Sequence record: MK054224.1
DNA: 16,044 bases
Reading direction: 5' to 3' (one strand)
Below the pieces are notes generated by a model. That model was not told the DNA's origin. It was given only the letters and a program-made list of their open reading frames with translations, and ran no database searches. Within the stretch, counting starts at the first letter, position 1; every line of letters starts with the position of its first letter. This document shows, piece after piece, positions 1 through 15,172 of the stretch. The position numbers and the translations under genes were made by a program.

Positions 1-49
1 ATGGGGGCCTGTCGAGCCCCTGACCCGGGTTCAAATCCCGGCCGCGGCG
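1..49 (+). tRNA. 3' part of tRNA-Asp(GUC), serving as the att core
   Basis: Anticodon stem GGGGC(4-8)/GCCCC(16-20), loop CTGTCGA with GTC at 11-13; T-stem CCGGG(25-29)/CCCGG(37-41), loop TTCAAAT; acceptor 3' strand CCGCGGC(42-48) plus discriminator G49. The 5' half is not in the window. Confidence 0.92.
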
Positions 50-226
50 TTGTGGGGGAATATCCCCCACTCCCCCTACTGCTATGTAAGTTTCTATTAT
101 CTTATCTAAAGGTGCAATGTAATAATGCCTTTGCTTACCGCCATCATCCTTCTCTATTAAGTAAACATAATACTTACCTTTAATCTCTTTTACATAGAAT
201 TTAGAATTAACGTAAAAGGAAGGCAT
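1..226 (-). CDS. int: Integrase N-terminal fragment, int(N), running through att
   Basis: Manual translation from ATG at 226: MPSFYVNSKFYVKEIKGKYYVYLIEKDDGGKQRHYYIAPLDKIIETYIAVGGVGDIPPQRRGRDLNPGQGLDRPP; SSV2-type integrase N-terminus; no stop before position 1. Not in the ORF track. Confidence 0.93.
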   Translation of the reverse strand, partial: MPSFYVNSKFYVKEIKGKYYVYLIEKDDGGKQRHYYIAPLDKIIETYIAVGGVGDIPPQRRGRDLNPGQGLDRPP

Positions 227-250
227 TCTAAGAATGTTAAGTAACGCGGG

Positions 251-258
251 TTTAAATA
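251..258 (-). promoter_or_regulatory. Putative TATA box of int (TATTTAAA on minus strand)
   Basis: TATA begins 32 nt upstream of the int ATG, typical leaderless Sulfolobales spacing. Confidence 0.55.
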
Positions 259-360
259 CTCATTCTAATAGAACGATCAGCGTGGAGTTGAAAGAAGACG
301 GCAAAGATTCCTCACTTTTGCGAAAAACTGAATATGTGATACTTAGCAACTGTGAGGCTT

Positions 361-746
361 TGGAAAATTTGTAATTGTATAACTGCTCACTAATTTATAC
401 AAGAGATACCCCTGTTTTGGGGGTATATCTAGAATAAATTAGTGAGGGTTGAGAAATTTTCATATTTTCCCGGCGGTCACTAATTTTTAGTAGCAACTGC
501 CAAAAAAAGAGGTGTAGTTTAAACTTTTGTAGACCGGGTTTAAAGTACACCTACTCCAGAAAAATTTGCTACTAAAAATTAGTGAGCACTTAGACAATTA
601 CAAATTTTCCAAGTGGTCACTGTTTTTTACTAGCAACTCTCAAAAAATGAGGTGTGTCTAGAATAAATTAGTGAGCGTTTAGAAAAATTATACATGTTTT
701 TGGGGTACACCTATGCCAGAAAAAATTTTTAGAACAAATTAGTGAG
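361..746. repeat. Iteron and inverted-repeat block, putative replication origin
   Basis: AAATTAGTGAG at 436-446, 576-586, 665-675, 736-746 (+) and 386-396 (-), one-mismatch copy 476-486 (-); exact 20-bp inverted repeat 477-496/566-585; 34/36 inverted repeat 361-396/576-611; exact 19-bp direct repeat 428-446/657-675. Repeats are directly seen, origin function is inferred. Confidence 0.75.
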
Positions 747-759
747 AGGTGGAACAAAT

Positions 760-1065
760 TCAAAAACTAAACTTCTTTTTAATCTTTAGTAGACTATCTA
801 AATGTTTTAGCTCCAATTCGCTGACCTGTAACACTTGACCGTCTTTAAGTCTCACAATGTAATAGACTTTACCCTTCTCATCTCTCTGCCATCCAATGAT
901 TTCGTAACTGTTGTCTGGTTCAATGTATCTAAAAATTGGAGGTTCTACAGTCCTATCAATATAAAGAAACACCAAACGTAAACATTCTTTAGCCTTTTCT
1001 ATCGTTTTCTCGTCAGCTACTAACCCGTCAAATTCTTTACAAGAATTCCACATACTCTTCACCAT
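760..1065 (-). CDS. Hypothetical protein (97-101 aa), last gene of leftward operon
   Basis: ORF overlaps the 3' end of the helicase-like gene; GGTGA SD favours the ATG at 1053. Confidence 0.75.
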   Translation of the reverse strand: MVKSMWNSCKEFDGLVADEKTIEKAKECLRLVFLYIDRTVEPPIFRYIEPDNSYEIIGWQRDEKGKVYYIVRLKDGQVLQVSELELKHLDSLLKIKKKFSF

Positions 1066-2638
1066 CTGTCATTTTATGGTTTACTAAGCCCCTTTCTTCG
1101 GCCCATTTTAGTACTTTTTCTGCAATCTCCTCACCGAGTATGCCATAAAATTCGCTGATCGTGAACTGCTTCCCCTTTAACTCTTTGTAAATTTCTGCCA
1201 TGTTACCCGCAAACGTCAAATCGCCGTTACCATCCCTCTCTTCTTTATAACCGTTCACGACAAGGTCTATGACCTTTTGCCCGAACTCGTTACGCCTCCA
1301 TTTATTCCTATTCGCTTTGTCCTTGTCAAGGTCTACCAGCCCTTTACGTGATAGGTTGTAGAGCCATGCCTTTGCTGTCTCTGTATCGACCTTGAGTCTC
1401 ATTGCTATAGTCTTCGTTTCTTCGAATTCGGTACTGGTAGCCTGTAACGCTTTCAGTTCGACACTCGTTAGCCCTACCGCTGATACTAGGAAGTACCTCA
1501 ATAGCTTTTGTGAGAAAAGTGAGTAAACTTCATCATCAACTACTTCTTTCCCTAACAACGATGCAAATATCTTCATAACTTTTAGGCCTTGGTCGTAAAC
1601 TCTAAACGCGTACTGGTTATACTCCGTAATGACGTCCTTGAACCTCATTGCGATTTCTTTCGGCAGTTTAACACTCCTCGGTGTATAGTACATCCATGCG
1701 ATAGCCAGGTATTTTGTCACGGGGTCATACTCAAACGCGTTATCACCCCTTTCCGCTATCTTCTCGTATATCTTTTCCACGTCTCCTCGTTCCAGGTCTA
1801 GGGCAACAGTCAGGAAACGACTCATTATCTGTGTCACTTGGTCATTGCTATAATCAATGTTTACCGCAGTAGAAACGACACTAGGCGGGTAATCTACTAT
1901 ACCGTAACTGCTTCCTAACTTATCATCTGTACTTTTTGCGGTTAAATTGGCCAGTCTACCTTCAGTCATCAGCATGCTTAACTCCTTTAACGCCTCGACG
2001 TCAATCGTTTCGACTATAAAGAGACAGCGGTTCTTCAGTAGTTTACCGTTCTCGTCGAAAGCCAGGTAGCTAAGTGCTTTTTTTGTTAAGTTTGAAACCC
2101 ACAGTACAGCTCCATATCCTTCTTTTAGACTAAACATATTGACGATACTCTTCACTGCTGAAGATTTTCCCGCTCCTGCACTCCCTAGCACAAGAACACC
2201 GATTTTAGGTAGACCTTCATAAAATGCCGATTTTATTGCTATCAACGTCAGTAGTTTTACCTCGTCGTCACCAACGTGCCATTTTTCAGATTGCCTTAAG
2301 AACCAACCGATAGGGTCTTTTCTTAATTCTTCCCACTGCTCCGGGAACTCTGTCATTACCCATTCCTGTAAAGGTTTCTCAACCGTATTTTCCGCTAACA
2401 CTTGCCTGACAAACTCGTTGAACTTCTCCTTTTCCCTTTTTATTGATGTACATTCGCTACTACGTTTAAACGTTCCTTCCGTTATAGGATATGTCACTTC
2501 TTTCCCGTCTTTGATATACCTGTAACTCGGTACAATGTATACTATGCCGTCGTCAATCGTTGCGTAAGTGTTTTCATCATCTATCTCTACTTCGATTTCA
2601 GCGTTTACACATTCACTATCATATGAATACCTCCTCAT
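1037..2638 (-). CDS. MCM-like AAA+ ATPase, putative replicative helicase with C-terminal winged-helix domains (533 aa)
   Basis: Walker A GSAGAGKS (2185-2162), Walker B-like LFIVE, sensor-1-like VVSTAVN, Arg finger IMSRF, sensor-2-like FRVY; C-terminal wHTH-like segments (TIAMRLKVDTETAKAWLYNLSRKGLV; AEKVLKWAEERGLV). Confidence 0.75.
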   Translation of the reverse strand: MRRYSYDSECVNAEIEVEIDDENTYATIDDGIVYIVPSYRYIKDGKEVTYPITEGTFKRSSECTSIKREKEKFNEFVRQVLAENTVEKPLQEWVMTEFPEQWEELRKDPIGWFLRQSEKWHVGDDEVKLLTLIAIKSAFYEGLPKIGVLVLGSAGAGKSSAVKSIVNMFSLKEGYGAVLWVSNLTKKALSYLAFDENGKLLKNRCLFIVETIDVEALKELSMLMTEGRLANLTAKSTDDKLGSSYGIVDYPPSVVSTAVNIDYSNDQVTQIMSRFLTVALDLERGDVEKIYEKIAERGDNAFEYDPVTKYLAIAWMYYTPRSVKLPKEIAMRFKDVITEYNQYAFRVYDQGLKVMKIFASLLGKEVVDDEVYSLFSQKLLRYFLVSAVGLTSVELKALQATSTEFEETKTIAMRLKVDTETAKAWLYNLSRKGLVDLDKDKANRNKWRRNEFGQKVIDLVVNGYKEERDGNGDLTFAGNMAEIYKELKGKQFTISEFYGILGEEIAEKVLKWAEERGLVNHKMTDGEEYVEFL

Positions 2639-3073
2639 TTATATCGCCCCGGCGTTCATTATGATAACGTCCTTTCTTAAGAATAATTCCTCGAAGCTAA
2701 GCCTAACGATTGGTTTAGACATGTCTGTTTCTCCTATAGTCCTATAATTCGTCAAATCGGAATATAGTACCTTTATTTTGTTAACGCATATTATGTCAGT
2801 GGTTTTCCCCGAATAAGAATTGTAAATCTTCAACTCATCGTTCTCTTTAATTAATTTGAATTCGTGATGATCGCAAACTTGCAATATTGCGTAAGCTTTA
2901 GGAGGTGAACCTCTCAGTGATACGAATATCGTAGAATAAAGGCCGTTATAGTCTTTCATAAACGCAATTATCATTTTCCTGATTTCGATATTTTCCTCAT
3001 AACACCTTAAATCATGTCCGCAGTAGGCTGAAGCCAATAAATGTTTAACGTAATCCCAACCGTTCTTAGTCAT
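2639..3073 (-). CDS. Hypothetical protein (144 aa)
   Basis: ATG at 3073 overlaps the upstream TGA (ATGA) with GAGGCG SD; its stop abuts the helicase-like ATG. Confidence 0.8.
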   Translation of the reverse strand: MTKNGWDYVKHLLASAYCGHDLRCYEENIEIRKMIIAFMKDYNGLYSTIFVSLRGSPPKAYAILQVCDHHEFKLIKENDELKIYNSYSGKTTDIICVNKIKVLYSDLTNYRTIGETDMSKPIVRLSFEELFLRKDVIIMNAGAI

Positions 3074-3489
3074 TTGCATCGCCTCAACTCGATAACCGGC
3101 TTTTCGAAAAGTATGCGTTCACAATTAGCTTTTTCAAAACTAAGACCTAGTTCCTCTAACCTCTTTTCTATTTCTTCAACATTTTCCTTTAACGTTAATC
3201 TCCTTTTACCTTCTATGTCACATAACGGGCAATTCGCATTAAAGCACCACTTAGCATCTGAACATGTTGCAGAAGTACCGTCGTCAAGAGCCGGTTGAAT
3301 GACAACATCGTTAACAATTAAAGGTGTTAAGGGGTCGTCGTTGATAAACGCTATACCTTTTCCGTAAGTACAATATCCTAAACTATACTTCCTATTTTCA
3401 AATCTCAGGACATTAACATACCATATTACTTTATGGTGGTATTTTTCTGGGTGTTCGAGTAAGTCCTTAATGTATTCTTTGACGTTCAT
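3070..3489 (-). CDS. Hypothetical Cys-rich, putative Zn-binding protein (139 aa)
   Basis: C-x5-C-x4-C-x2-C (CSDAKWCFNANCPLC); tight operon packing. Confidence 0.8.
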   Translation of the reverse strand: MNVKEYIKDLLEHPEKYHHKVIWYVNVLRFENRKYSLGYCTYGKGIAFINDDPLTPLIVNDVVIQPALDDGTSATCSDAKWCFNANCPLCDIEGKRRLTLKENVEEIEKRLEELGLSFEKANCERILFEKPVIELRRCK

Positions 3490-3492
3490 CGT

Positions 3493-4011
3493 TTACCCCT
3501 TTAGTTTCGGCTTAGCCTGTGTTACTTTTTTCGCTTCATTCTTTTCCTGTTCTACTCTTTCTTCCGTTTCCTCTTCCCTTTCTTCGTCTTCTGTTTCTTC
3601 ACCTAGCACTAGTATCTCGTCGTAGAACGTCTTGTTCTGCTTCTTACTCACTTTGATTTTTAGTTTGGTACCCTCGGTGATTTCTTTACTCTCCCATGCG
3701 TCGTATAACACCTCATATGCTTTAGACGTCAACTTCATTATAGCTTTGTCTCCTAGTTCACTCGCATCATACTTCTTTGGTTTTACAACTTCATCACCGT
3801 CTTCCGTCTTCGTAACGACTTTCTCCGTGACGCTCTCAAACTTTCCGCTTACCGGCTTTACGATAATACTGTAGTCTTCAATCTTCTTCACTGTACCGTC
3901 TTTCAACGCTATTTCTCTCTCAACGGCCTTTGGTGATTGCAACACTTCTACGGTTACTTCGTCGAACGGCTTAACGATTGGTAACCTTTCCCTTTTCATT
4001 AATACTTTCAT
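3493..4011 (-). CDS. Probable SSV1 E178-like protein; possible OB-fold ssDNA-binding protein with acidic tail
   Basis: Beta-rich core followed by EETEDEEREEETEERVEQE tail; position next to F93-like and RHH genes as in SSV1. E178 similarity is from recall; SSB function is inference. Confidence 0.7.
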   Translation of the reverse strand: MKVLMKRERLPIVKPFDEVTVEVLQSPKAVEREIALKDGTVKKIEDYSIIVKPVSGKFESVTEKVVTKTEDGDEVVKPKKYDASELGDKAIMKLTSKAYEVLYDAWESKEITEGTKLKIKVSKKQNKTFYDEILVLGEETEDEEREEETEERVEQEKNEAKKVTQAKPKLKG

Positions 4012-4193
4012 GCGTTAACACCCTCCTTTAATACCTCTTGTCTCTTCTTGTCGATATACCCTCTGCTTAACGCTTCAATGATTAAGATCTCAATTGCATC
4101 TGTTAGAGTTAGCTTTTCTTGTTTAGCTAAAAAAACGAATTTTTCTTTAATTTCACGATCTAATTTTATTCCTACATACTCTCTCTCTTTCAT
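4008..4193 (-). CDS. Ribbon-helix-helix (CopG-like) regulator, 61 aa, possibly SSV1 E51-like
   Basis: YVGIKLDREIKEKFVFLAKQEKLTLTDAIEILIIEAL is an RHH pattern; ATG at 4193 lies 34 nt below a TATA box, so the track start at 4247 is probably too long. Confidence 0.8.
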   Translation of the reverse strand: MKEREYVGIKLDREIKEKFVFLAKQEKLTLTDAIEILIIEALSRGYIDKKRQEVLKEGVNA

Positions 4194-4205
4194 GGCCAAT
4201 TTATA

Positions 4206-4245
4206 TTTAAACAACAAAAGTATAAAAGTTTTTTGGTGTTTAAAC
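4206..4245 (-). promoter_or_regulatory. Leftward early (T5-like) promoter: TATA flanked by inverted operator half-sites
   Basis: TTTTATA on minus strand (4227-4221) between ATTTAAACAACAAA (4205-4218) and TTTGGTGTTTAAAC (4232-4245); 37/40 identical to the inverted 4740-4779. Confidence 0.75.
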
Positions 4246-4254
4246 ATAATTAGG

Positions 4255-4692
4255 CTAAGATTTCAAGAACCTTTGTAAATATTTCAAGTCGTCTATAATC
4301 CTCTTTTTAGCCTCTTCATCAAGTATCCCCAATCTTGTAAATATTTCAACATATGGAATCAAGATTGTCTGTCCCGCTAACGCCATTGCTATAAGTATCT
4401 TGTTAGGGTCTGCCTCTTTTTTCATTCGTTTATAGGTCTCAATACCCGGTTTCAGCGATATCGCGAAAAGTTTACCCTTTTCCGTGAGATATATCTTTTT
4501 TTCCCCTTTCTCTTGTTTCTCTTCTATAAAGCCTTCCTGAATAAGAAATTTCTTAGCGTCATAAAAAGTGGCGGTGGACATGGGGAAATCCGCGTTTACT
4601 TTCTTATATAAATCATATGTGGCTATCCCTTCATTATCATATATGTAGACTAATACTATCGCTTCAGGGTAGAAGAAAGGAGTACTTTTCAT
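4255..4692 (-). CDS. SSV1 F93-like winged-helix (MarR/PadR-like) regulator with C-terminal extension (145 aa)
   Basis: MKSTPFFYPEAIVL...MSTATFYDAKKFLIQEG...YLTEKGK closely matches recalled SSV1 F93; TATTTAAA (4722-4715) lies 30 nt upstream of the ATG at 4692. Confidence 0.88.
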   Translation of the reverse strand: MKSTPFFYPEAIVLVYIYDNEGIATYDLYKKVNADFPMSTATFYDAKKFLIQEGFIEEKQEKGEKKIYLTEKGKLFAISLKPGIETYKRMKKEADPNKILIAMALAGQTILIPYVEIFTRLGILDEEAKKRIIDDLKYLQRFLKS

Positions 4693-4713
4693 ATATCGCA
4701 TATATAATTTATA

Positions 4714-4780
4714 GTTTAAATACCAAACGTTTTAGTGTTGTTTAAATACCAAAAAGTTTTTATACTTTTGTTGTTTAAAC
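4714..4780 (+). promoter_or_regulatory. Rightward early (T6-like) promoter with three operator copies
   Basis: GTTTAAATACCAAA at 4714-4727 and 4740-4753, inverted TTTGTTGTTTAAAC at 4767-4780, TTTTATA at 4758-4764. Confidence 0.75.
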
Positions 4781-4800
4781 AATAGATAGAGGGTCAAAAA

Positions 4801-5109
4801 ATGGTTGAACCCCAATACCAGGAAAAAGTTTTGGGTGAAGTTAGTTTGAATTTTTTTATTCGTTCCGTAGAGGTTGAGGGAAGACATAACTTCTACTTCA
4901 AACTATACGTGAGAATAAAAGATGATAAGAATGGAACTGAAATCGATCAGCAGTTTCTAAGTCCAGAAGAGTATGAAACCCACCGCATTTTGAAAGACAT
5001 CGAGAAATTGTATAATTTAGCCCGCTTTTCGCAAAATGAAAAATTGGCACAAGGGGCGAAAGAAGAGATTCTAAAATTAATTGCGTTACTGCTTTCGCGT
5101 GTAAGTTGA
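4801..5109 (+). CDS. SSV1 A100-like protein (102 aa)
   Basis: First gene of the rightward early operon; C-terminal KEEILKLIALLL resembles the A100 family. Confidence 0.7.
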   Translation: MVEPQYQEKVLGEVSLNFFIRSVEVEGRHNFYFKLYVRIKDDKNGTEIDQQFLSPEEYETHRILKDIEKLYNLARFSQNEKLAQGAKEEILKLIALLLSRVS

Positions 5110-5117
5110 GGTGGACG

Positions 5118-5252
5118 ATGATGAGGAGTAGACGTGAAAAGATGTTAAAAATATTCGAGAAGATCCTAGACGAAACAGATGATATAGAAGATCTTGAGCA
5201 ACTAATAGAGATAATTCAAGATTATATATATCGTGCCGGTGAGGGGGAATGA
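5118..5252 (+). CDS. Small acidic helical protein (44 aa), absent from ORF track
   Basis: GAGGTGG SD at 5108-5114; MMRSRREKMLKIFEKILDETDDIEDLEQLIEIIQDYIYRAGEGE; stop overlaps the next ATG (ATGA). Confidence 0.8.
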   Translation: MMRSRREKMLKIFEKILDETDDIEDLEQLIEIIQDYIYRAGEGE

Positions 5253-5467
5253 CCAAGAAGTGGAATAAGAAGAAGGAGGAAAGATATGAGGATATATGTT
5301 TAGGTGAGGACTATGATGAGGAGTATTGTTATGACTTTGTAACAAGGGAAGATGACTCAGTTGATGACGAGAATGAAGTATTAGAGATTCTTCTTGACGC
5401 TAAACGCTTAACAGATTTGCTTTCTCAAGAGTTGAATAATTATATCATAAGGGTGACAAAGGGATGA
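5249..5467 (+). CDS. Highly acidic hypothetical protein (72 aa)
   Basis: ATGA overlaps at both ends; 21 of 72 residues are D/E. Confidence 0.8.
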   Translation: MTKKWNKKKEERYEDICLGEDYDEEYCYDFVTREDDSVDDENEVLEILLDAKRLTDLLSQELNNYIIRVTKG

Positions 5468-5658
5468 AGGCAAGAGTGGAATACATTAAACTCCCGAAAT
5501 CTTATAGCCCTCGTAAAGACTGGGACATGGACGTGATTTCATTCAAATTACCTCCAGAGCTTAAGGCAAAATTAGAGAGAGTAGCGTACGAGAGAAAGGT
5601 TTCAAGAAGTGAACTGATTAGAATAGCGATCACCAAATATCTAGAAGAGGTAAAGTGA
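5464..5658 (+). CDS. SSV1 C80-like RHH transcription regulator (64 aa)
   Basis: MKARVEYIKLP N-terminus and VISFKLPPELKAKLERVAYERKVSRSELIRIAI RHH motif. Confidence 0.9.
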   Translation: MKARVEYIKLPKSYSPRKDWDMDVISFKLPPELKAKLERVAYERKVSRSELIRIAITKYLEEVK

Positions 5659-5659
5659 A

Positions 5660-5902
5660 ATGTATAGATGTCCAATTTGCGGTTTCAGAACCATCAGGTT
5701 GTTTGCATTAAAACAACACGCACGACATGCCCATGTATTAAATCAGTGTCCAGTTTGCAAGAAGGAATATCTTAATATTTATCAGCATTTCTATGTCCAC
5801 GCATACAACGATACTAGCCACTTAGTTCTGTGCTATTTATTTACAACCAACAAACTCAGGAGTTTCGCGAAACAAAAAGTGAAAGAACTCTTAAGGTGTT
5901 AG
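5660..5902 (+). CDS. SSV1 A79-like C2H2 zinc-finger protein (80 aa)
   Basis: CPICG...HARHAH and CPVCK...HFYVH; follows the C80-like gene. Confidence 0.9.
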   Translation: MYRCPICGFRTIRLFALKQHARHAHVLNQCPVCKKEYLNIYQHFYVHAYNDTSHLVLCYLFTTNKLRSFAKQKVKELLRC

Positions 5903-5904
5903 AT

Positions 5905-6207
5905 ATGATGATTTATGATATACTATTATATTATGGGTTTCAGTTCAATGACTATTGGACAACAATATTAGGTACCAAAGTTGGCGGAAGAGAAGCAAAT
6001 CTAGTAGCGAGGTTGTTTATGAAAAACAGATTAACATTAGCTATCTATAAATTTGATCTCGCTACAGTGGCTCTATTATTAGCTTTCATGTTAGATAACG
6101 TAAAAATGATACAAACGTTCCTACTTATTGTTGATGTTGTTGAATGCCTTGTAACACTAAACAATACTCTTACGATATATAGGCGTAAGAAGGTGAGAGC
6201 AAAATGA
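5905..6207 (+). CDS. Hypothetical protein (100 aa), positional SSV1 C102a-like
   Basis: AAGGTG SD before the ATG at 5905; the track start at 5830 overlaps the upstream gene and is unlikely. Family assignment is mainly from gene order. Confidence 0.65.
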   Translation: MMIYDILLYYGFQFNDYWTTILGTKVGGREANLVARLFMKNRLTLAIYKFDLATVALLLAFMLDNVKMIQTFLLIVDVVECLVTLNNTLTIYRRKKVRAK

Positions 6208-6383
6208 GGAAATTATGGGTGGTTTCAGCAAAAGACCCTTACGGTGATATTGTTTATCTGAAAATAACGCCTAAAAAGTCTACTGCGAAACGGTATTTGA
6301 AAGAGTGCAAAGAGATTTTCAATAGTTGTGAAATGGTACTTGGTGAGTTCTACACTCTCGATGAGGCTGAGGGGAAAATATAA
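6204..6383 (+). CDS. Hypothetical protein (59 aa), absent from ORF track
   Basis: MRKLWVVSAKDPYGDIVYLKITPKKSTAKRYLKECKEIFNSCEMVLGEFYTLDEAEGKI; ATGA overlap upstream, TAATG overlap downstream. Confidence 0.8.
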   Translation: MRKLWVVSAKDPYGDIVYLKITPKKSTAKRYLKECKEIFNSCEMVLGEFYTLDEAEGKI

Positions 6384-6754
6384 TGTCAGGTAATAAAAAT
6401 TACCTGAGTAATCGTAAAACTTTAGGGATTCATGTGTCTGCAGAAGAACTAAAACGGTACCACTCTTTATCTGCAGAACAGAAAAGGTTGTTAAGGATAA
6501 TCGTTAAGGTGCTTATTTATAACCCTGAATTGCTTAACGAAAGTTCTTATCTTTACAAATTACTCACCACAAAAGCTATATCGCCTTACGTTTGCCCCCT
6601 TTGCTTAATACCGTTTTCCTCTTCCGTTAGTCTGAAACAACACATTAGATATGCTGAACATACGACAACTTGCCCGGTGTGCGGTAAGGAGTTTGCAAAG
6701 ACTGACGCACTCTTAGACCATGTTTGCAAAAAACATAATATCTGCGTTAGTTAG
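6383..6754 (+). CDS. SSV1 B129-like tandem C2H2 zinc-finger DNA-binding protein (123 aa)
   Basis: CPLC...HIRYAEH and CPVC...HVCKKH; usual position at the end of the early operon. Confidence 0.9.
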   Translation: MSGNKNYLSNRKTLGIHVSAEELKRYHSLSAEQKRLLRIIVKVLIYNPELLNESSYLYKLLTTKAISPYVCPLCLIPFSSSVSLKQHIRYAEHTTTCPVCGKEFAKTDALLDHVCKKHNICVS

Positions 6755-7096
6755 GTGATGTTGATGAATAGGCTAAAGGTCTTATGGTTCATCTTCATTT
6801 TAGGTAATATTTATGATGTCGTAATATCGGCAATAGCGTGGAGGTATGGGGCTATGGAAATAAATCAAACTTTAATTGATTTAGGCTTATGGTATGGTAA
6901 CACATCATTTTTTTCAGTAATGGAAGCATTTGTTGGCGTCAAATTAATACTAATAGTTGGAGTTTATTGGTTACTAAAATTATTCGAAAAACTTGGAGTT
7001 AGTAAGTATGAATGGTTGGGATTGGCCCCATTCGCCATTGAAACAATTTTTGTTTTAATATATGATACTTATAATTTCGTAATGCATCTTTTTTAG
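6755..7096 (+). CDS. Multi-pass membrane protein (110-113 aa)
   Basis: About three hydrophobic segments; NIYD...GAMEINQ resembles the DUF5658-type motif (recall); GGTGA SD favours the ATG at 6764. Confidence 0.8.
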   Translation: MMLMNRLKVLWFIFILGNIYDVVISAIAWRYGAMEINQTLIDLGLWYGNTSFFSVMEAFVGVKLILIVGVYWLLKLFEKLGVSKYEWLGLAPFAIETIFVLIYDTYNFVMHLF

Positions 7097-7109
7097 GCCC
7101 TTTATAAAG
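7094..7109 (+). promoter_or_regulatory. Conserved promoter TAGGCCCTTTATAAAG (T3-like)
   Basis: TTTATAAA starts 32 nt before the ATG at 7133; identical 16-mers at 8292 and 12343. Confidence 0.85.
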
Positions 7110-7132
7110 TCTACCTTCTTTTTTCGCTTACA

Positions 7133-8032
7133 ATGAGGAAGACCCTTCTAGCTCTTCTAACCCTATCCCTAGCGTTACTAATGTTAACAACACCTACCGG
7201 TGCTATAACTGCAAGTCAGTTAGGTGCAAATCAAATAGTATTTACGACTAATCAATTCTATATTGCCGGCGTTTCATATAGCAATGAGTGGTTTTCAGCC
7301 TTCTTCCATGGTTGGAACCCAATCGTATATGATGTTGAGGGTATCTATTTACGTAACATCTCTTTAGGGTACGTGAACAACCCTAATGGTAATGGCTATA
7401 ATGAAATATTTATAGGTATAGGGCTTAGTGCATATGCCACCGGGACTTTAGGAGGTGCCGGAACGCCGGGACAAATTATAAACAATGCAGTGTTGGCGGG
7501 CTTATATATTGTAACTACCAGTAGTGGATCCTATTATTATTATGTAGGCGCTGAAACATTACAAAATGGTAATCCTATAATTGCTAAAGATTCACCACCC
7601 ATAACCGGTTCTCTTCCAATAAGTGTGCAAACATATTTATATGATGATGGGAACGGAACTGCCACTGCGTATATAACATTATATTATTCATATGGTCTAC
7701 TGACATATAGTTTCTACGTCCCATATCCTTTTAATCCTAGTCAAGGATATGCCTCATATTCTGCACTCACTTTAATTGGTGCGATATTGCAATTACCATA
7801 TATTAGTGGAGGGCTAACGAGTTTCGATTTTACCTATCAAAGTAACGGGCAAAACTATGAATGGCCGAATCAGGTAGCCTCTGGTACTCAGATCATGGCA
7901 GGGGTTTATAACATATCAAGTTCCGTAAACGAGTTTACACAAGTAAGTCTGTATAACGGTTTCTTAAATAATGGTTTGTGGTCTTACATCTATAATTTTA
8001 CCTATCCATATCCTACCACACACGCACTCTAA
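7133..8032 (+). CDS. Secreted protein at the SSV1 A291 / SSV9 B310 locus, putative viral toxin (299 aa)
   Basis: Signal peptide MRKTLLALLTLSLALL like A291; Y/G/S/N/T-rich body; own promoter; located upstream of VP4. Confidence 0.7.
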   Translation: MRKTLLALLTLSLALLMLTTPTGAITASQLGANQIVFTTNQFYIAGVSYSNEWFSAFFHGWNPIVYDVEGIYLRNISLGYVNNPNGNGYNEIFIGIGLSAYATGTLGGAGTPGQIINNAVLAGLYIVTTSSGSYYYYVGAETLQNGNPIIAKDSPPITGSLPISVQTYLYDDGNGTATAYITLYYSYGLLTYSFYVPYPFNPSQGYASYSALTLIGAILQLPYISGGLTSFDFTYQSNGQNYEWPNQVASGTQIMAGVYNISSSVNEFTQVSLYNGFLNNGLWSYIYNFTYPYPTTHAL

Positions 8033-8038
8033 GGCAAA

Positions 8039-8060
8039 ATTTTTTATCCTTTCTTTTTTA
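8039..8060 (+). terminator. T-rich tract after the A291-like gene, possible terminator
   Basis: TTTTTTTATCCTTTCTTTTTTA-type pyrimidine run just after the stop; part of it could instead be the TATA box of the next gene. Confidence 0.45.
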
Positions 8061-8061
8061 T

Positions 8062-8286
8062 ATGTTTAATCAAATGCCAACCGAGTCTATAACAAACGTA
8101 ACAAACGAGCCTATAATACCGTTTACGGTTAAGACTCATAACCCCTCCCCACCATCGCCGTTCCAAGTGGTTTATGATTACATCCCTACAATAATTCTAT
8201 CAATAGGAATAACCCTTTTAGTTTTAACAATCTATGTATCACCATCCCTCAGAATAGCATTAAGAAAATTCTTCGTAAGACGTTAA
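8062..8286 (+). CDS. Small single-pass membrane protein (70-74 aa)
   Basis: Pro/Thr-rich N-terminus with NVT sequon, TM segment IPTIILSIGITLLVLTIYV, basic C-tail RIALRKFFVRR; occupies the SSV1 C124 slot. Confidence 0.75.
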   Translation: MFNQMPTESITNVTNEPIIPFTVKTHNPSPPSPFQVVYDYIPTIILSIGITLLVLTIYVSPSLRIALRKFFVRR

Positions 8287-8291
8287 CAGAT

Positions 8292-8307
8292 TAGGCCCTT
8301 TATAAAG
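8292..8307 (+). promoter_or_regulatory. Conserved promoter TAGGCCCTTTATAAAG for the VP4 operon
   Basis: TATA starts 31 nt before the ATG at 8330. Confidence 0.85.
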
Positions 8308-8329
8308 CCATTTAATTTTTTATCGCTTA

Positions 8330-10765
8330 ATGAAGTGGGGACTATCTTTACTACTACTAACCCTCTTACTCTCACCTATCTTAACAAACGGTGTTATAAC
8401 CGGGCCTCATCCATACTTAGATGGCGGTGGGGGTTTTACCGGGCCTTTCTTCAAATACTCTAACACAATTCAAGTTGGATCCTCTACTTTTTCTTCTAAA
8501 TACAATGGTTCAACCCTTTCTACCGCACCATGGCTTAACCCGACTTACGTTTCGATATACAACACTTATTACCTTCAAGTTTTACCGAACCAAGAGTACA
8601 TTTCAAATAACGTATCTCTTTCTCTTTCATCATCACAAATCGCTCTAAACGTCACATGGTTATTAGCGTCTTCCGGTAATTCCGGATCCTACGGTTCAAT
8701 CGCCATAGGCTACGGTGTTAATTTTCCTTCAGGATTTACGGGTAACTATGCACCCGCACCACCTTACGCCTCTGATGGGATTGTAGTTTATCTGGAAAAA
8801 GGTGGTTTTCCAACATATAGGCTATTCGTATACTTTGATGGTGTGAAACAGTTAAACGTATCTGTGGGATCAATCAGTGTTGGGCAACAAATAGGTTTAG
8901 GGTTCTGGTACTTACCCGCTACAAACCAACTTTACGTTTATTACTATAACGGTACTCTAAAGACTTTTTCAATAACACCGGGTCAAGTTATCAATAATCA
9001 ATTTTATCCTCTTTCATTGAATACTATAAATAGTAATTATGTCATTGATGCTCAAAATGTTGGGCCGGGGTACGGTTACGGGCAGTGGGTGTTAATATCA
9101 TACTCAATCTTCCAAACTAAGACATATAGTGCAACACTTAGCTATACATCTGTTATTTTAGGCAATGGTATTCAGGCTTTGGCGGGATTTACTGGTGCGT
9201 ACAACCCTTTAAACGTGTCCACTAATGTGACCTCTTGGTCTGTTGTAGGTATCGTTAAGGTTGTAAATTATAGTGTTTCAAACTCACAATATTCATTGAT
9301 CGGTAGTGTGAGTTACTTAACATCAACAAATACTGTTTACTTCATTCTTAATAGTATTTACCCCACATATAGTGTAAACACATGGTATCTTAACGTAACG
9401 TTAGAGTTTCAGTTTGTAACGCCCTCAAGTACAGTCTACAAGAATATTACAATTCCGATTTTTGACGGGGGATTTGCGGTTCTTGTCCAAGTAAGCTTAC
9501 CGCAATCATCATACCTATCAGGTCAGACTATTAGTGTTTCTAATTCTACAACTATTGAATATCCCTCTAATGCGGGATATTCGTTAGCCTTAAAACCGGT
9601 TGTAGAAATTAATATACAAGGTCTCACTAACGGCTTTGTGCCATTACCTTACACGGTTACTGCGAATGTGAACGCACAAACAACATATTATTACGTTATA
9701 AACATACAATTCGGTCAATTCTCTCTAGGTGGTCAAACTGGTACAATAACAATATACCCCGTCAGCCAATTACCCGTTATATTCGTTTCACAATATCCCA
9801 CATCAGTTACGTCTGGTACTAAGGTGACTATAACTTTTCAATTCACTCTCAACACACCCGTTTCAAATGTGACAATGTCAGCGTTTAGCCAATCCACTAC
9901 GACTTTCGCATGGACTTACGCGTCTCTTTTATCGTCATCATCACTTGTGGAGTTTCAGGGGTACTGGCTATCAGCGAATGACGGAATTATAATCATTACG
10001 CAAAGTCAAAACTATTTAATTCCCTTCAATTATGTAGGTTTGACGTTTTATAACAACAGTGTTAACACAATTCAGATTAACGTTATAAATAACGCGTTAC
10101 AACTGAATGTTAATAATAACGTGCTAAACTTAGCTAACTCATCTAAAGTTATCGGTATAGGATTCTATTACGGTGCGGGGAAGTTAGTGTTAAACTGGTT
10201 CTTTGTTAGCGGTATCGTTTTGCAGTCTGCCACTGCAAATCAGGCGTATACGATTCTGACGGGTACAAGTCTGAACACATTGACACAGTATACGAATGGA
10301 TACACGAATGCGTCAGGGTTTGGACAAGTGACAGTGACGCTTACATATACTCCTTACGAGTTAGTGGAAATCTACTGGGGTGGTCTACAGAAATACGCAA
10401 TCCTAAACATTAGCGTCACTCAGCCTACTACAACTACAACTACGACTGTGAATACTTCAACATTAAACTATAACTACACTAATCCGTTTACTAACAACAT
10501 ATCGCCTACCTCAACCCTTTACAACTTTAGCAATGCCCAACCATGGGCGATGTTGATAGGGATAGCCGTGACGGTGATAGTCACGTTACTAGGTTGGAAG
10601 TTTGGTGGAAAAGGTGGTGCTAGTGGTGGTGTAGTTATGGGGTTAATCGCCGTGTCCTATCTAGGTTTAGTGCCATGGTATATCTTCTACATCTTCATCT
10701 TTGGCATAGCGTTACTATTAGCGAAAATATTCGTAGATAGGTTTATGGGTGGTGAGGAGGAATGA
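8330..10765 (+). CDS. vp4: VP4 tail/adsorption protein (SSV1 C792-like), 811 aa
   Basis: Signal peptide, long S/T/N/Y-rich body with many N-x-S/T sequons, C-terminal TM helices; precedes the B78-like gene. Confidence 0.92.
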   Translation: MKWGLSLLLLTLLLSPILTNGVITGPHPYLDGGGGFTGPFFKYSNTIQVGSSTFSSKYNGSTLSTAPWLNPTYVSIYNTYYLQVLPNQEYISNNVSLSLSSSQIALNVTWLLASSGNSGSYGSIAIGYGVNFPSGFTGNYAPAPPYASDGIVVYLEKGGFPTYRLFVYFDGVKQLNVSVGSISVGQQIGLGFWYLPATNQLYVYYYNGTLKTFSITPGQVINNQFYPLSLNTINSNYVIDAQNVGPGYGYGQWVLISYSIFQTKTYSATLSYTSVILGNGIQALAGFTGAYNPLNVSTNVTSWSVVGIVKVVNYSVSNSQYSLIGSVSYLTSTNTVYFILNSIYPTYSVNTWYLNVTLEFQFVTPSSTVYKNITIPIFDGGFAVLVQVSLPQSSYLSGQTISVSNSTTIEYPSNAGYSLALKPVVEINIQGLTNGFVPLPYTVTANVNAQTTYYYVINIQFGQFSLGGQTGTITIYPVSQLPVIFVSQYPTSVTSGTKVTITFQFTLNTPVSNVTMSAFSQSTTTFAWTYASLLSSSSLVEFQGYWLSANDGIIIITQSQNYLIPFNYVGLTFYNNSVNTIQINVINNALQLNVNNNVLNLANSSKVIGIGFYYGAGKLVLNWFFVSGIVLQSATANQAYTILTGTSLNTLTQYTNGYTNASGFGQVTVTLTYTPYELVEIYWGGLQKYAILNISVTQPTTTTTTTVNTSTLNYNYTNPFTNNISPTSTLYNFSNAQPWAMLIGIAVTVIVTLLGWKFGGKGGASGGVVMGLIAVSYLGLVPWYIFYIFIFGIALLLAKIFVDRFMGGEEE

Positions 10766-11001
10766 CTGACGCAATTAGTTTAGCCCTTCAAACGGGTTTA
10801 GGGCCCGTTATTGGCGTCGTCATTATCATTTCTCTAATGGGGTTGACGTACAAAATTGCGGGAAGGATCCCCGCTATCATCACGGGAATAGCGTCAACAT
10901 TTGTATTGATTTTTATGGACTTTATACCCGTTTATTGGGGTATAGGGATTATATTTGGTCTGATAGCCGGGATGGTATTAGGTGGGAAAGATGGGTACTA
11001 A
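10762..11001 (+). CDS. SSV1 B78-like membrane protein (79 aa)
   Basis: Hydrophobic; ATGA overlap with VP4; MTDAISLALQTGLGP start. Confidence 0.88.
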   Translation: MTDAISLALQTGLGPVIGVVIIISLMGLTYKIAGRIPAIITGIASTFVLIFMDFIPVYWGIGIIFGLIAGMVLGGKDGY

Positions 11002-11494
11002 GCTAATAGTCTACGTGTTAATTTTCGATATCTTTCTTTCGCTAATGGTAGGTGCTTACGGTGGAATCTCACCACCGTCAATACCACCGATACCTAGCTA
11101 TAGTTTCGATCAAGCTTTAGCATCATCAATCGTGTGGACTGTAGGATGGCCACCAATCACTTTATGGGGATCCGTGACACTTATTCCACCGTTTTCGATA
11201 TTGGGGGCCAATTTTCCGGGGCTAACTTTACCGGGTGTAACGATTCCGGGCGTAACACTGTTTAGTATATCGTTTTCATGGCTAGCACCCCTCTTCTACA
11301 TCTCTGGTTGGATAATCTGGATATTCCAAACGGTAGCATCAACAGTAGGATATTTGTTAAGTATTTTTACAAGTAGTGTAGCGTTACTATCGTCAGTACC
11401 GGTGGTAGGGCCATTCCTTACTGCGTTTATACTTATTGTTAATTTCATTCTCATTTGGGAACTGGTGAAACTGATAAGGGGTTACGGGCCATGA
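10991..11494 (+). CDS. SSV1 C166-like membrane protein (167 aa)
   Basis: GGTGG SD before the ATG at 10991; hydrophobic and Pro-rich; core gene order. Confidence 0.88.
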   Translation: MGTKLIVYVLIFDIFLSLMVGAYGGISPPSIPPIPSYSFDQALASSIVWTVGWPPITLWGSVTLIPPFSILGANFPGLTLPGVTIPGVTLFSISFSWLAPLFYISGWIIWIFQTVASTVGYLLSIFTSSVALLSSVPVVGPFLTAFILIVNFILIWELVKLIRGYGP

Positions 11495-11832
11495 CTTATA
11501 ACGCGAATGAGATAAGGGCAAAAATCCTAAGAAAGAAGATACTGGAGCTTATCGCTGAAAACTACGTACTCTCTGCGTCGCTAATCTCTCACACACTGCT
11601 TTTGAGCTATGCCACCGTTTTGCGTCATCTCAGGATCCTAAATGAACACGGCTATATCGAATTGTACAAAGAAGGGCGAACGTTATATGCAAAAATTAAG
11701 GATAATTCGCGGAAAATTCAGATTCTGAATTCAGAACTGGAGGGGTTTAAAAAGCTTAACGAAAAGACCTTAGTGACCAAGAATGAGGGCAGTCGCGGTA
11801 TTGTCAACACCAAAGAAACTAAGAAGGGCTGA
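11491..11832 (+). CDS. SSV1 B115-like HTH regulator (113 aa)
   Basis: [39 protein letters not shown] wHTH; ATGA overlap at 11491. Confidence 0.9.
11737..11753 (+). promoter_or_regulatory. VP1/VP3 (T1/T2-like) promoter inside the B115-like gene
   Basis: CTGGAGGGGTTTAAAAA-type sequence with TTTAAAAA at 11746-11753, 37 nt before the VP1 ATG; resembles the recalled SSV1 capsid promoter. Confidence 0.7.
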
Positions 11833-12052
11833 GGCAACTAACATAGGTGTACTGTTAGGGTTATTCATCTTCATCCTTATAGGAATAGTATTATTGCCCG
11901 TTATCGTTTCACAAGTAAACAACCTCACGAGTGGTACCGCACCCGCGGTTACGGGTACTAATGCTACATTATTGAACTTGGTACCGCTATTCTATATACT
12001 TGTATTGATAATAGTCCCCGCGGTAGTAGCGTATAAGATCTACAAAGATTGA
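11783..12052 (+). CDS. vp1: Major capsid protein VP1 precursor (89 aa)
   Basis: [35 protein letters not shown]...[12 protein letters not shown]; two TM helices; conserved Glu at the maturation site; NLT and NAT sequons. Confidence 0.97.
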
Positions 12053-12066
12053 GAGGTGTGAGAAAG

Positions 12067-12345
12067 ATGGAGTCAAATGTTAAGGCAATTATTTTTTTGT
12101 TTGTCTTTATCCTCATCGGGGTTGTCCTATTCCAACCAATTTATAATGAAGTAGTTTACGTTACGACATCAGGAACTTACACTACTATTACCTCAGGTAC
12201 TCTAGTTACATCATCGTTTATACCTAACCCGCAATATGTAGGGTCTTCAAACGCTACTGTTGTATCATTAGTACCGGTCTTCTACTTACTTGTGTTGATA
12301 ATAGTACCGGCCGTGATTGGTTACAGATTGTACAAGAGTGAGTAG
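12067..12345 (+). CDS. vp3: Minor capsid protein VP3 (92 aa)
   Basis: VP1 paralog with TTSGTYTT...[11 protein letters not shown]; GAGGTG SD before the ATG at 12067. Confidence 0.96.
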
Positions 12346-12358
12346 GCCCTTTATAAAG
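12343..12358 (+). promoter_or_regulatory. Conserved promoter TAGGCCCTTTATAAAG (T9-like)
   Basis: TATA starts 31 nt before the ATG at 12381; the first three bases are the VP3 stop codon. Confidence 0.85.
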
Positions 12359-12380
12359 CCATATTCTTTTTTTCCTCTTG

Positions 12381-12629
12381 ATGAGTGCGTTAGGCGATGT
12401 AATCTATATTTTAGGTATTTTAATCCCACTCCTAGGATTGGTCGTAAGGAACTATCTAGTTGAATTGCTAGGTTTTGTAATGGGTACGATTGCGTTCTTA
12501 GCGTTTGTGCAAAATTATACAGACATAACATTTTCAGCGTCAAACTTCTATTTGGCGTTACTACCTTTAGCGTTTGGCTTAATGGACTTTGCCTTCTTCT
12601 TTAACTGGCTTAAGGAGGAAAGAATATGA
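12381..12629 (+). CDS. SSV1 A82-like membrane protein (82 aa)
   Basis: MSALGDVIYILG; hydrophobic; first gene after the T9-like promoter. Confidence 0.88.
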   Translation: MSALGDVIYILGILIPLLGLVVRNYLVELLGFVMGTIAFLAFVQNYTDITFSASNFYLALLPLAFGLMDFAFFFNWLKEERI

Positions 12630-12862
12630 AGGTGATACATAATGATATACGTTTCAGAAAATTACGCATTGGACATACTTATTTTCGATATAACTATGCT
12701 CATTACTGCACTACTATTCAGAAAGCCAAAGCCCAAACCCGTGAAATCAACATTAGACCACAAAACCATAAGGCGATTAGGGTATTACACCGTAGGAGCC
12801 GGGGTATTAACGCTCTTCTTAGGCCATTTGGGTTTTTACGAAAGTTTTTGGGAATACCTTGA
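12626..12862 (+). CDS. SSV1 C84-like overlapping basic ORF (78 aa)
   Basis: AAGGAGG SD and ATGA coupling to the A82-like stop, but almost entirely overlapped by the A92-like ORF in another frame. Confidence 0.45.
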   Translation: MKVIHNDIRFRKLRIGHTYFRYNYAHYCTTIQKAKAQTREINIRPQNHKAIRVLHRRSRGINALLRPFGFLRKFLGIP

Positions 12863-12926
12863 AGGGTTGATGTTAGATGCTTTCCTATTTTACATTGGGT
12901 TGAGAATGGTGATCCAAGGTGAGTGA
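12642..12926 (+). CDS. SSV1 A92-like membrane protein (94 aa)
   Basis: AAGGTGA SD; three hydrophobic segments; YVSEN...DITMLIT...KPVKST motif. Confidence 0.8.
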   Translation: MIYVSENYALDILIFDITMLITALLFRKPKPKPVKSTLDHKTIRRLGYYTVGAGVLTLFLGHLGFYESFWEYLEGLMLDAFLFYIGLRMVIQGE

Positions 12927-13746
12927 TGGGAAACTACTTCATGCGTGGGAAGAGGAATTAAGAAAGGCCCAAACGGTAGATGAGTTAAGGCAAAAATATG
13001 AAGAAATGCAAAAGCAGATAGCGGATAGCAAAACGCTTAAACGCTTATACAAAGTTTATGAAAAGAGAGAATTCGAAATAAAGAAAGCACAGTTTGAGCA
13101 GTTGAAGGCTGAACTTTCAAAGAAGAAGAAGAGGTTCAAGAAAGAGAAGGTTGACGTTAGGGTTAAGGTAGTTAAGAAATGGATCAATTCGCGTTTGTTT
13201 ACGGCTGAGCATTATGTGGCAATGCTACAACAGAGTCGCGACGGTTTACAGTTACTGTTCCTCAGGAAAGTGAAGTTAATCGAAAATCAGGGGTACCTGA
13301 TGTTGGAAAATAGGAAGATGAGAAAGTCATGGGTCTTAAACGGTGAACCGTTGTTACTTGAAAAGAGTAAATTCCCGTTTGGGCGGAAATTTGTAGCCGT
13401 ACACTTTGTCCTACCAGACTATCCGTATACGCTTAACTTAACGGTTGACGAGAAGATTAGGCAATTAACGCTGAAGAGTCTTAACGCCCCTCAGATTATT
13501 CACTCTATTGTTAGGACAAAGTTCTTTGAAGCACTTGCAAAAGTCGGTGGTGGGCCGGATTTTACAATGTTAGTTATCGGCGTTATAATGGGGATAGGGA
13601 TAGGGGTAGCCGTAGGTTTCGGAATAGCAAACGCTAACTTAACGCATTTACTCTCTCAACACGTGACTAATAGCACAGTAACGCATGTTACATCATCAAC
13701 AACATCACCTAGTTTCACGATTCCAAGTAACAGTACAAAGGGGTGA
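12919..13746 (+). CDS. SSV1 B277-like protein (275 aa)
   Basis: N-terminal coiled coil, C-terminal TM (VIGVIMGIGIGVAVGFGIA) and Ser/Thr tail; GTG start with GGTGA SD; core gene order. Confidence 0.88.
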   Translation: MSDGKLLHAWEEELRKAQTVDELRQKYEEMQKQIADSKTLKRLYKVYEKREFEIKKAQFEQLKAELSKKKKRFKKEKVDVRVKVVKKWINSRLFTAEHYVAMLQQSRDGLQLLFLRKVKLIENQGYLMLENRKMRKSWVLNGEPLLLEKSKFPFGRKFVAVHFVLPDYPYTLNLTVDEKIRQLTLKSLNAPQIIHSIVRTKFFEALAKVGGGPDFTMLVIGVIMGIGIGVAVGFGIANANLTHLLSQHVTNSTVTHVTSSTTSPSFTIPSNSTKG

Positions 13747-13751
13747 GTTAA

Positions 13752-14931: not shown

Positions 14932-15045
14932 CGTTGTTTTTCTTTCAATTCTACACGTGTAAGGTACTTGAAACGGGTCTAGTTTTATAGCGGGGGCAGT
15001 GTTTGCTTATTCCTAATATATATTATGTAAACCGCAAAAGAAAGG

Positions 15046-15053
15046 CTTATTAG
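15046..15053 (+). promoter_or_regulatory. Putative TATA box (CTTATTAG) with A-rich BRE for the 31-aa ORF
   Basis: AAAAGAAAGG-CTTATTAG starts 31 nt before the ATG at 15077. Confidence 0.5.
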
Positions 15054-15076
15054 CTTTTTAAATATATGATAAAAAT

Positions 15077-15172
15077 ATGGACTCGATATGGCTTTTAGTT
15101 TTAGCAGGCATTGGGTTGGAGTCACTCTTTATTTATTATATGGAAAGGCTAAGGCGTGTGTCCAACACGTAA
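15077..15172 (+). CDS. Small single-pass membrane peptide (31 aa), absent from ORF track
   Basis: MDSIWLLVLAGIGLESLFIYYMERLRRVSNT; hydrophobic stretch followed by basic residues; promoter-like sequence at leaderless spacing. Confidence 0.55.
   Translation: MDSIWLLVLAGIGLESLFIYYMERLRRVSNT

Follow-up and report, generated by a model that had tools for sequence, protein, structure and literature searches.

A candidate MCM-like initiator-helicase gene beside an iteron cluster in a Sulfolobus spindle-shaped virus

In the pRN1 protein ORF904 and the alpha protein of phage P4, a ring ATPase encoded by the element binds the origin of that same element through a C-terminal winged helix. MCM-like helicases are also known from bacterial mobile elements, for example Cch/DUF927 of SCCmec, the Bacillus cereus prophage MCM and DUF3987 of phages (PMC5862659, PMC4889955). 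The mode of replication of fuselloviruses is still open, and no origin of a Sulfolobus spindle-shaped virus (SSV) has been functionally characterised (PMC6080066). Similarity among the viral proteins ASV1 C674, SSV7 B471 and SSV9 A460 was already noted by Redder et al. (sequence-record annotation). Makarova et al. (2014) found C674 to be close to the helicase domain of the prim-pol arCOG07809 (Mpal_2033 type), suggested a role in initiating viral DNA replication and labelled the domain superfamily I (PMC4158269). The link of this family to replication initiation was already made in 2014; in the literature searched, no paper was found that calls the family MCM-like or ties it to iterons. The window analysed here, a stretch of 16,044 bases, matches record MK054224.1 identically and comprises the whole circular genome of Sulfolobus spindle-shaped virus strain NL01B.C01.07; all 36 genes of the record are annotated as hypothetical. 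This alphafusellovirus is a provirus integrated at tRNA-Asp, and its Sulfolobus islandicus host was isolated from Nymph Lake, Yellowstone (PMC6452263). One of its genes (GenBank AZG03665.1) encodes a member of the same family and lies beside a cluster of iterons that forms a candidate origin (Table 1). On balance, the product of this gene is probably an initiator-helicase for replication, carried by the virus and of MCM-like (superfamily 6, AAA+) type, a reading drawn from sequence comparison and structural modeling.

The ATPase is closest to MCM by three independent lines, namely Pfam family matches, profile searches of PDB sequences, and Foldseek comparison of an AlphaFold2 model, and the MCM AAA+ core proposed by the initial annotation of this DNA from its motifs is thereby supported. 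The protein alone gave sub-threshold generic AAA and winged-helix matches in Pfam, together with weak sub-threshold matches to nSTAND and DUF815, and it does not match PF00493, the MCM P-loop domain. Across 31 family members scanned against Pfam, PF00493 was matched by 12, and its best E-value (1.7e-6) was the best obtained for any ATPase family. Searches of PDB sequences with the single sequence or with a profile of close homologs returned nothing useful; MCM was reached only by profiles built from diverged members. The profile of the ATPase plus lid (residues 88-390; 17 diverged members), run against 177,635 PDB sequences, had as its top match the archaeal MCM 8q67 (E 3e-6), followed by MCM9, MCM8 and the Pyrococcus MCM fragment 4r7z. 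The Sulfolobus (Sso) MCM was aligned over positions 11-300 of the 301 in this profile, and non-MCM matches were restricted to the P-loop. The AlphaFold2 model was built on a 31-sequence alignment and reached a mean predicted local distance difference test (pLDDT) of 84.3 and a predicted template modeling score of 0.75. Its nine best Foldseek matches in the PDB were all MCM subunits, with E-values from 4.8e-9. Template modeling (TM) scores were 0.60 against MCM5 and MCM8 chains consisting of the ATPase tier only, 0.54 against BchI, and 0.39-0.40 against RuvB.

Other assignments came out behind MCM. RuvB was found by Foldseek with an E-value of 6.8e-8 at the low TM scores given above and a root-mean-square deviation of 16-17 A; RuvB_N was matched by one of ten individually scanned relatives (E 0.0057) and lies outside the 25 Pfam families matched by most members. 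Superfamily 3 (SF3), the class of pRN1 ORF904 and D5-like proteins, also lies outside those 25 families and is not represented among the best structural and profile matches, and a helical lid with a conserved arginine follows the core of the present protein. MoxR ranked below MCM in the Pfam, PDB profile and Foldseek tests. The label of superfamily I helicase given to this domain in PMC4158269 is not supported by the present results.

All seven motifs that had been read from the sequence as an MCM-type series are present in the order proposed, between residues 121 and 348: HVGDDEVKLLTLIA (residues 121-134), the Walker A motif, LFIVE (206-210), LSMLMTEG (220-227), STAVN (256-260), SRF and FRVY. 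When conservation was scored over 17 diverged family members, K158 of Walker A and R274 of the arginine finger were invariant, and G157, T257, L189 and Y191 were conserved in at least 90%. N260 of sensor 1 is not conserved in the family, and an arginine occupies the column of the candidate sensor-2 residue R346 in most of the aligned members shown. The model places a predicted pre-sensor-1 beta-hairpin between the helix at 214-226 and strand beta-4.

The protein is described as MCM-like, and not as a member of the MCM family proper, because it departs from MCM in its N-terminal domain, its helix-2 region and its Walker B motif. The absence of the long MCM zinc/OB region, as annotated initially, is borne out by the absence of any match to Pfam MCM_N or MCM_OB in this protein or its family. 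In its place stands a confidently modeled domain, in which helices (66-120) are predicted to come after a long antiparallel sheet (2-48). The domain is kept across the family, pSSVi included, and has no counterpart in the PDB (best Foldseek E 0.53). It contains two cysteines, fewer than a four-cysteine zinc site requires; two spaced cysteines occur in the C63 region in most relatives. No helix-2 insert hairpin is seen in the model between beta-2 (178-181) and beta-3 (205-208), where local pLDDT is 78-80 and two short helices (188-192 and 196-201) are modeled. In the Walker B motif, V209 replaces the Mg-binding aspartate and E210 stands at the position of the catalytic glutamate; the earlier reading of this motif as VE rather than DE was correct, and its caution about activity was justified. 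With positions anchored on the preceding [KR]-hhhh, any of E, D, V, Q, T, A or G is found at the first Walker B position across the family, followed by E or Q. Members other than the present protein have Q-E, T-E, A-E or G-E, a few have E-E or D-E, and the pSSVi clade has E-Q.

A role in replication is supported by relatives fused to primases and by a homolog in the satellite plasmid pSSVi, and the role assigned to the gene initially fits both. An exhaustive search with phmmer, run on 1.84 billion cluster representatives, returned 34 proteins at E <= 1e-3, and the family is therefore small; 31 of these 34 carry a precomputed PF27228 assignment. Among the distant relatives, P0064 has DnaG-type primase domains N-terminal to the ATPase, while P0067 (phmmer E 4.6e-4) combines an archaeo-eukaryotic primase (AEP-TOTE) with the ATPase and a MarR winged helix. 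The sole plasmid match was ORF735 (735 residues) of pSSVi, a 5.7-kb SSV satellite, with 27% identity over residues 92-462 (ATPase, lid and first winged helix; E 2e-29). ORF735 is by far the largest gene of pSSVi and, as its only large open reading frame (ORF), is therefore the plasmid's candidate replication protein. Among viruses, the gene occurs in 13 other Nymph Lake SSVs with 93-99% protein identity, and searches with tblastn and BLASTP gave identities of 84% for SSV9, 38% for YNP1 (E 2e-47) and 26% for ASV1 C674 (E 5e-11), with about 25% for SSV7 B471 and some Kamchatka SSVs. Many members are 600-860 residues long, and in those examined the additional N-terminal sequence is mostly of low complexity. 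The SSV9 (SSVK1) homolog (2501-4113) is split into ORFs A460 and C78 in the deposited sequence; the split involves a frame change within the wing of the first winged helix and is either a sequencing error or real. Scans of one-genome-per-species contigs with SSV-type or pSSVi-type alignments detected no relative. The gene is accessory in that many SSVs do not carry it and presumably rely on host initiators.

The two winged-helix-like segments claimed at the C-terminus were both recovered, on different kinds of evidence. The fold of the first (wH1) spans about residues 386-450; TrmB/MarR Pfam matches were found in 20 of the 31 family members and PDB MarR matches reached 3.5e-9, and the profile match to MCM8 spans both the lid and the winged helix of MCM8. 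The second (wH2) is suggested by a predicted H-b-H-H-b-b topology and by marginal matches to the TFIIE-beta winged helix (E 0.02). To call the protein an initiator-helicase fusion, as the initial annotation did, is an overstatement, a C-terminal winged helix being a feature of canonical MCM as well. The MarR-like region also bears on a different reading, in which the protein would be an AAA+ regulator of transcription, or a remodeller, acting on early and lysogeny genes: an ATPase of MoxR-, chelatase- or enhancer-binding-like kind, held on DNA by a MarR-type winged helix and having no direct role in replication. Such a regulator would suit the predominance of MarR and TrmB among the sequence matches, the RefSeq name of pSSVi ORF735 ('MarR family transcriptional regulator'), the appearance of MoxR-like and BchI structures among the Foldseek matches, and the location of the gene in an early, T5-like operon downstream of an F-93-type regulator. 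It is nevertheless improbable, as MCM stands above MoxR and the chelatases in every test, relatives are fused to primases, and pSSVi would be left with no replication protein.

wH2 (residues 480-533; window 1040-1201) is 56% identical to the last 54 residues of pSSVi ORF735 (2387-2548) and 64-80% identical to the C-terminus of the pSSVi-like protein P0039, the other domains of which show 18-28% identity; over the two proteins together, identity outside wH2 is 18-30%. The close SSV homolog P0027 carries a different wH2 (34% identity), and in several family members wH2 is absent or different. This distribution suggests that viruses and satellite plasmids have exchanged the domain. The proposal that the pair of winged helices reads the adjacent iterons can accordingly be kept in part: wH1 is likely to be the sequence-specific DNA reader, whereas wH2 is common to pSSVi-type proteins, and the pSSVi sequence that was read contains no AATTAGTGA iteron. 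wH2 would be better explained as an exchangeable partner-binding or regulatory domain. Within the part of ORF735 that encodes its N-terminal extension, pSSVi also has a 55-nt inverted repeat (482-600; 82% complementary) with a G+C-rich center.

The adjacent iterons noted initially are real: six exact copies of AAATTAGTGA are found against an expectation of 0.09, and six were reached in none of 200 shuffles. The copy nearest the gene (736-745) lies about 290 bp past the stop codon (1037-1039), and iterons lie inside 87-nt repeat units spaced 140 nt apart (429-515 and 569-655). By blastn, the iteron region is present in all 14 genomes that carry the gene and in no others. Two metagenomic SSVs, L010 and L011, whose proteins are 90% and 86% identical to the present one, have the same iteron downstream of the gene. 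In SSV9, the corresponding place is occupied by a variant, AATTAGGAG (unit also given as AATTAGGAGA), in six exact copies (expectation 0.09), and the SSV9 wH1 recognition helix (residues 419-431) differs at three positions. A possible SSV10 origin was proposed at the same relative position, upstream of the integrase (PMC6080066). In L011 (IMGVR_UViG_3300026877_000099), the iteron region measures about 1 kb (4876-5870) and contains nine AATTAGTGA copies in inverted pairs as well as a second dense repeat family, GGTATTAC.

Under the initiator-helicase reading, the protein would form a ring, probably a hexamer, in which R274 completes the ATP site of the neighboring subunit. wH1 would recognize the AAATTAGTGAG iterons and nucleate assembly at the AT-rich repeat region. 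Beta-hairpins lining the central channel would then pull one DNA strand, in the 3'-to-5' direction if the motor is MCM-like, and the origin would open. Host primase and polymerase would be recruited next, possibly via wH2 or the N-terminal domain; a host primase is invoked because the protein has none of its own. The computational evidence supports the MCM-like assignment as far as such evidence can.

Several observations weigh against this reading. The Walker B motif has no Mg-binding aspartate, and the E-Q form of the pSSVi clade resembles a hydrolysis-dead mutant; the model has no helix-2 insert hairpin. In MCM, the N-terminal domain drives hexamer formation and DNA loading, and here that place is taken by another fold without a PDB match. 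Iteron clusters were looked for downstream of the homologs in ASV1 and YNP1 and not found, and the co-occurrence of gene and iterons could stem from physical linkage alone. The sister virus MK054227, which does not carry the gene, has a different repeat cluster composed of CTCCTAAGGAG and TGCTGCATGCAGC at the same position beside its integrase; such repeats therefore do not require the MCM-like protein. In that virus (330-545), CTCCTAAGGAG palindromes and TGCTGCATGCAGC lie between the integrase and the T5 genes, and a CTCCTAAG core resembles the SSV9 iteron CTCCTAATT.

A further point concerns a neighboring gene in related viruses. Directly upstream of the homolog, SSV9 (1020-2504) and ASV1 (1152-2831) carry a gene for an XPD/Rad3-like superfamily 2 (SF2) helicase; in YNP1 (1439-3133) one small ORF separates the two genes, and an SSV7 counterpart (A583) is mentioned in the ASV1 record. 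In MK054224, two small ORFs (139 and 146 residues) take its place, and the XPD-like gene is absent from the window. The SSV9 protein named 'DNA helicase' in RefSeq was rejected as a homolog of the MCM-like protein, as it is the neighboring XPD-like ORF B494. The XPD-like enzyme could be the unwinding enzyme of ASV1, SSV9 and YNP1. This arrangement is also pertinent to the main rival reading, which we hold to be unlikely but with an appreciable chance, that the protein is an origin-binding ATP switch of the Orc1/Cdc6 kind, which would use its winged helix to bind the repeats, bind ATP but hydrolyse it poorly, and recruit host MCM, or which in ASV1, SSV7 and SSV9 might recruit the neighboring XPD-like helicase instead. 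The order of AAA+ core, lid and winged helix is Orc1/Cdc6 architecture as well; the Walker B motif is degenerate, reading V-E in this protein and E-Q in pSSVi-clade proteins; the JGI name of one homolog is 'Cdc6-like AAA superfamily ATPase'; and the SF2 helicase gene is adjacent in four related viruses. An assignment to Orc1/Cdc6 nevertheless ranked below MCM: no such chain was among the 50 best Foldseek or 60 best PDB profile matches, and no Cdc6-specific Pfam family was among the 25 matched by most members. The predicted pre-sensor-1 hairpin is typical of translocases, and primase fusions are a hallmark of replicative helicases by the criterion of PMC4889955.

Comparison with sister viruses sheds light on how the gene and the iterons are inherited. 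In MK054230, from the same spring, the block comprising the iterons, ORF97, the MCM-like gene and its upstream ORFs is inverted as a unit (571-3710), with the iterons still 3' of the gene, ORF97 still beside it, and the 146-residue ORF (2639-3079) absent. Relative to the MK054230 allele (1503-3101), the 5' two thirds of the gene, encoding the N-terminal domain and ATPase, show synonymous divergence (dS) of about 1 or at saturation; dS is 0.36 in the lid, 0.02 in wH1 and 0.0 in wH2, and the iteron region is 99.1% identical. Judged by this profile, the gene is a recombinant mosaic; the near-identity of the wH1-wH2 coding end and of the iterons indicates that both were inherited together. The ratio of nonsynonymous to synonymous divergence (dN/dS) against the same allele is 0.06, and strong purifying selection acts on the gene. 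Window positions 188-4026 are without a counterpart in MK054227, which is 97-98.5% identical over the aligned parts (window 4027-4815 and 5464-15336). MK054227 integrates at tRNA-Leu rather than tRNA-Asp, and most of the integrase (15337-16044 plus 1-103) has no nucleotide match there, so that the integrase, the repeats and the MCM-like module differ together between the sisters. The gene order of the differing parts in MK054224 is Rep then integrase, as in pSSVi.

These comparisons invite the tentative suggestion, which we consider speculative and rather unlikely, that the integrase, the iteron origin and the MCM-like protein constitute a self-contained and portable replication-integration module common to fuselloviruses and their satellite plasmids. 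Its exchangeable parts may be a motor (N-terminal domain plus AAA+), a specificity unit of wH1 with its cognate iterons, AATTAGTGA here and AATTAGGAG in SSV9, and a partner-binding wH2. On this view, wH2 could have stayed nearly identical in viruses and pSSVi-type plasmids because one host or helper replication factor is shared, or competed for, by both; the interplay of helper and satellite replication would then have a molecular basis. The location of the gene in a variable, recombining part of SSV genomes, the exchange of wH2 between viruses and satellite plasmids, and the weak nSTAND and DUF815 matches could also be taken to mean that the protein is a selfish or conflict NTPase, acting in STAND-like defence or anti-defence or in the exclusion of competing SSVs and satellites. 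That interpretation is highly improbable: the nSTAND match covers the P-loop region only and is below threshold, no effector domain is present, and the lid, the arginine finger and the MCM-wide alignment point to a ring AAA+ protein.

The MCM-like gene, for which the initial annotation gave no strand, belongs to a tightly packed minus-strand operon in which the upstream ORF ends at 2639; the 172-residue upstream ORF is a homolog of SSV9 C158, and no family match was found for ORF97. The gene for the F-93-type regulator is bracketed by a 41-nt inverted repeat (93% complementary; 4206-4246 and 4739-4779), in the region of the divergent promoter and close to an end of the invertible block. The integrase gene crosses the start of the record (15254-16044 joined to 1-226, minus strand). 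A scan for sigma-70 promoters and terminators was at chance level, the sigma-70 model not being meaningful for an archaeal virus. The ORF at 14245-14931, a homolog of the SSV 'DnaA-like' ATPase, has a marginal Pfam match to the Zot P-loop family (E 3.5e-4). ORFs at 7133-8032 and 8062-8286 hold the position upstream of VP4 where SSV9 encodes a secreted anti-Sulfolobus toxin (PMC8628083), and the 299-residue ORF at that position corresponds to the SSV8 C247, SSV10 B298 and SSV7 allele, not to the SSV9 allele. The MCM-like gene was rejected as the toxin of PMC8628083, since the toxin locus lies upstream of VP4.

Table 1. Features of the MCM-like locus in MK054224.1 (window positions; residues are those of the MCM-like protein).
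Feature	Position	Strand	Remarks
Iteron cluster, candidate origin	387..745	both orientations	six exact AAATTAGTGA copies: 387-396 (-), 436-445 (+), 477-486 (-), 576-585 (+), 665-674 (+), 736-745 (+)
Mobile block	428..4017	.	iterons, ORF97, MCM-like gene, upstream ORFs
ORF97	760..1053	-	small, 97 aa, 3' of the MCM-like gene; overlaps its 3' end by 17 nt
MCM-like AAA+ protein	1037..2638	-	complete ORF, 533 aa plus stop, ATG start; AZG03665.1, hypothetical protein
Linker (467-479, low confidence) and winged-helix-like domain 2 (wH2, about 475-532)	1040..1243	-	
Winged helix 1 (wH1), residues 386-465	1244..1483	-	MarR/TrmB type
Alpha-helical lid, residues 286-385	1484..1783	-	AlphaFold2; profile aligns through Sso MCM lid
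Candidate sensor-2 Arg346 in FRVY, residues 345-348	1595-1606	-	start of lid helix 345-361
AAA+ alpha/beta core, residues 125-285	1784..2266	-	AlphaFold2 secondary structure; MCM best match
Arginine finger S273-R274-F275	1814..1822	-	R274 invariant; precedes strand 276-279
Strand beta-4 and sensor 1 SVVSTAVN, residues 253-260	1859..1882	-	
Predicted pre-sensor-1 beta-hairpin, residues 229-248	1895..1954	-	AlphaFold2 strands 229-237 and 240-248
Strand beta-3 and non-canonical Walker B CLFIVETID, C205-D213	2000..2026	-	
Walker A GSAGAGKS, G152-S159	2162..2185	-	K158 invariant
N-terminal domain, residues 1-124	2267..2638	-	AlphaFold2 pLDDT 87.8 when modeled alone
Three upstream ORFs	2639..4011	-	144/146 aa, 139 aa and 172 aa; same tightly packed operon

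The locus pairs a candidate initiator-helicase with a candidate origin a few hundred bases away, and it comes with natural specificity variants of the iteron (TGA versus GAG) and with natural controls, as the module is inverted in one sister virus and absent from another. Should it prove active, the protein would represent a minimal motor of MCM type that has an odd Walker B and lacks the zinc/OB N-terminal domain, and it would inform our understanding of what MCM rings need for loading and unwinding. In Sulfolobales genetics, the gene together with the iterons could find use as a compact replicon.

Compared with MCM itself (Sso MCM 6mii/4fdg, M. acidophilum 8q67 and MCM8/9), the protein shares the alpha-0 'VG..e.K' helix, Walker A, the SRF finger, a predicted pre-sensor-1 hairpin, and a lid with a candidate sensor-2 arginine followed by a winged helix. 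It differs in having no zinc/OB N-terminal domain and no visible helix-2 hairpin, in its V-E rather than D-E Walker B, and in its extra second winged helix, and identity in structural alignments is about 11-14%. Its relationship to pSSVi ORF735 is one of true homology: the conserved N-terminal domain is the same, and in both elements an SSV-type integrase gene follows in the same orientation, although ORF735 has about 150-200 additional N-terminal residues (low-complexity in close relatives) and an E-Q Walker B. In SSV9, ASV1, SSV7 and YNP1, the homologous gene points away from the integrase and follows the XPD-like SF2 helicase gene. The MCM-like helicases of bacterial mobile elements resemble the present protein as divergent superfamily 6 AAA+ replication proteins without the canonical N-terminal domain, often fused or adjacent to primases. 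DUF927 and primase-helicase proteins appear among the viral Foldseek matches, and the likeness rests on the literature and on weak fold matches; these helicases belong to a different host domain, and no direct sequence link to them is detectable. pRN1 ORF904 (PMC2777425) and P4 alpha are SF3 proteins with their own primase and no AAA+ lid, whereas the present protein has a lid with a candidate sensor-2 arginine. Orc1/Cdc6 proteins share the order of AAA+ core, lid and winged helix and the presumed origin-binding role, but are absent from the best matches shown; the protein differs from them in its predicted pre-sensor-1 hairpin, a feature of the translocase clades.

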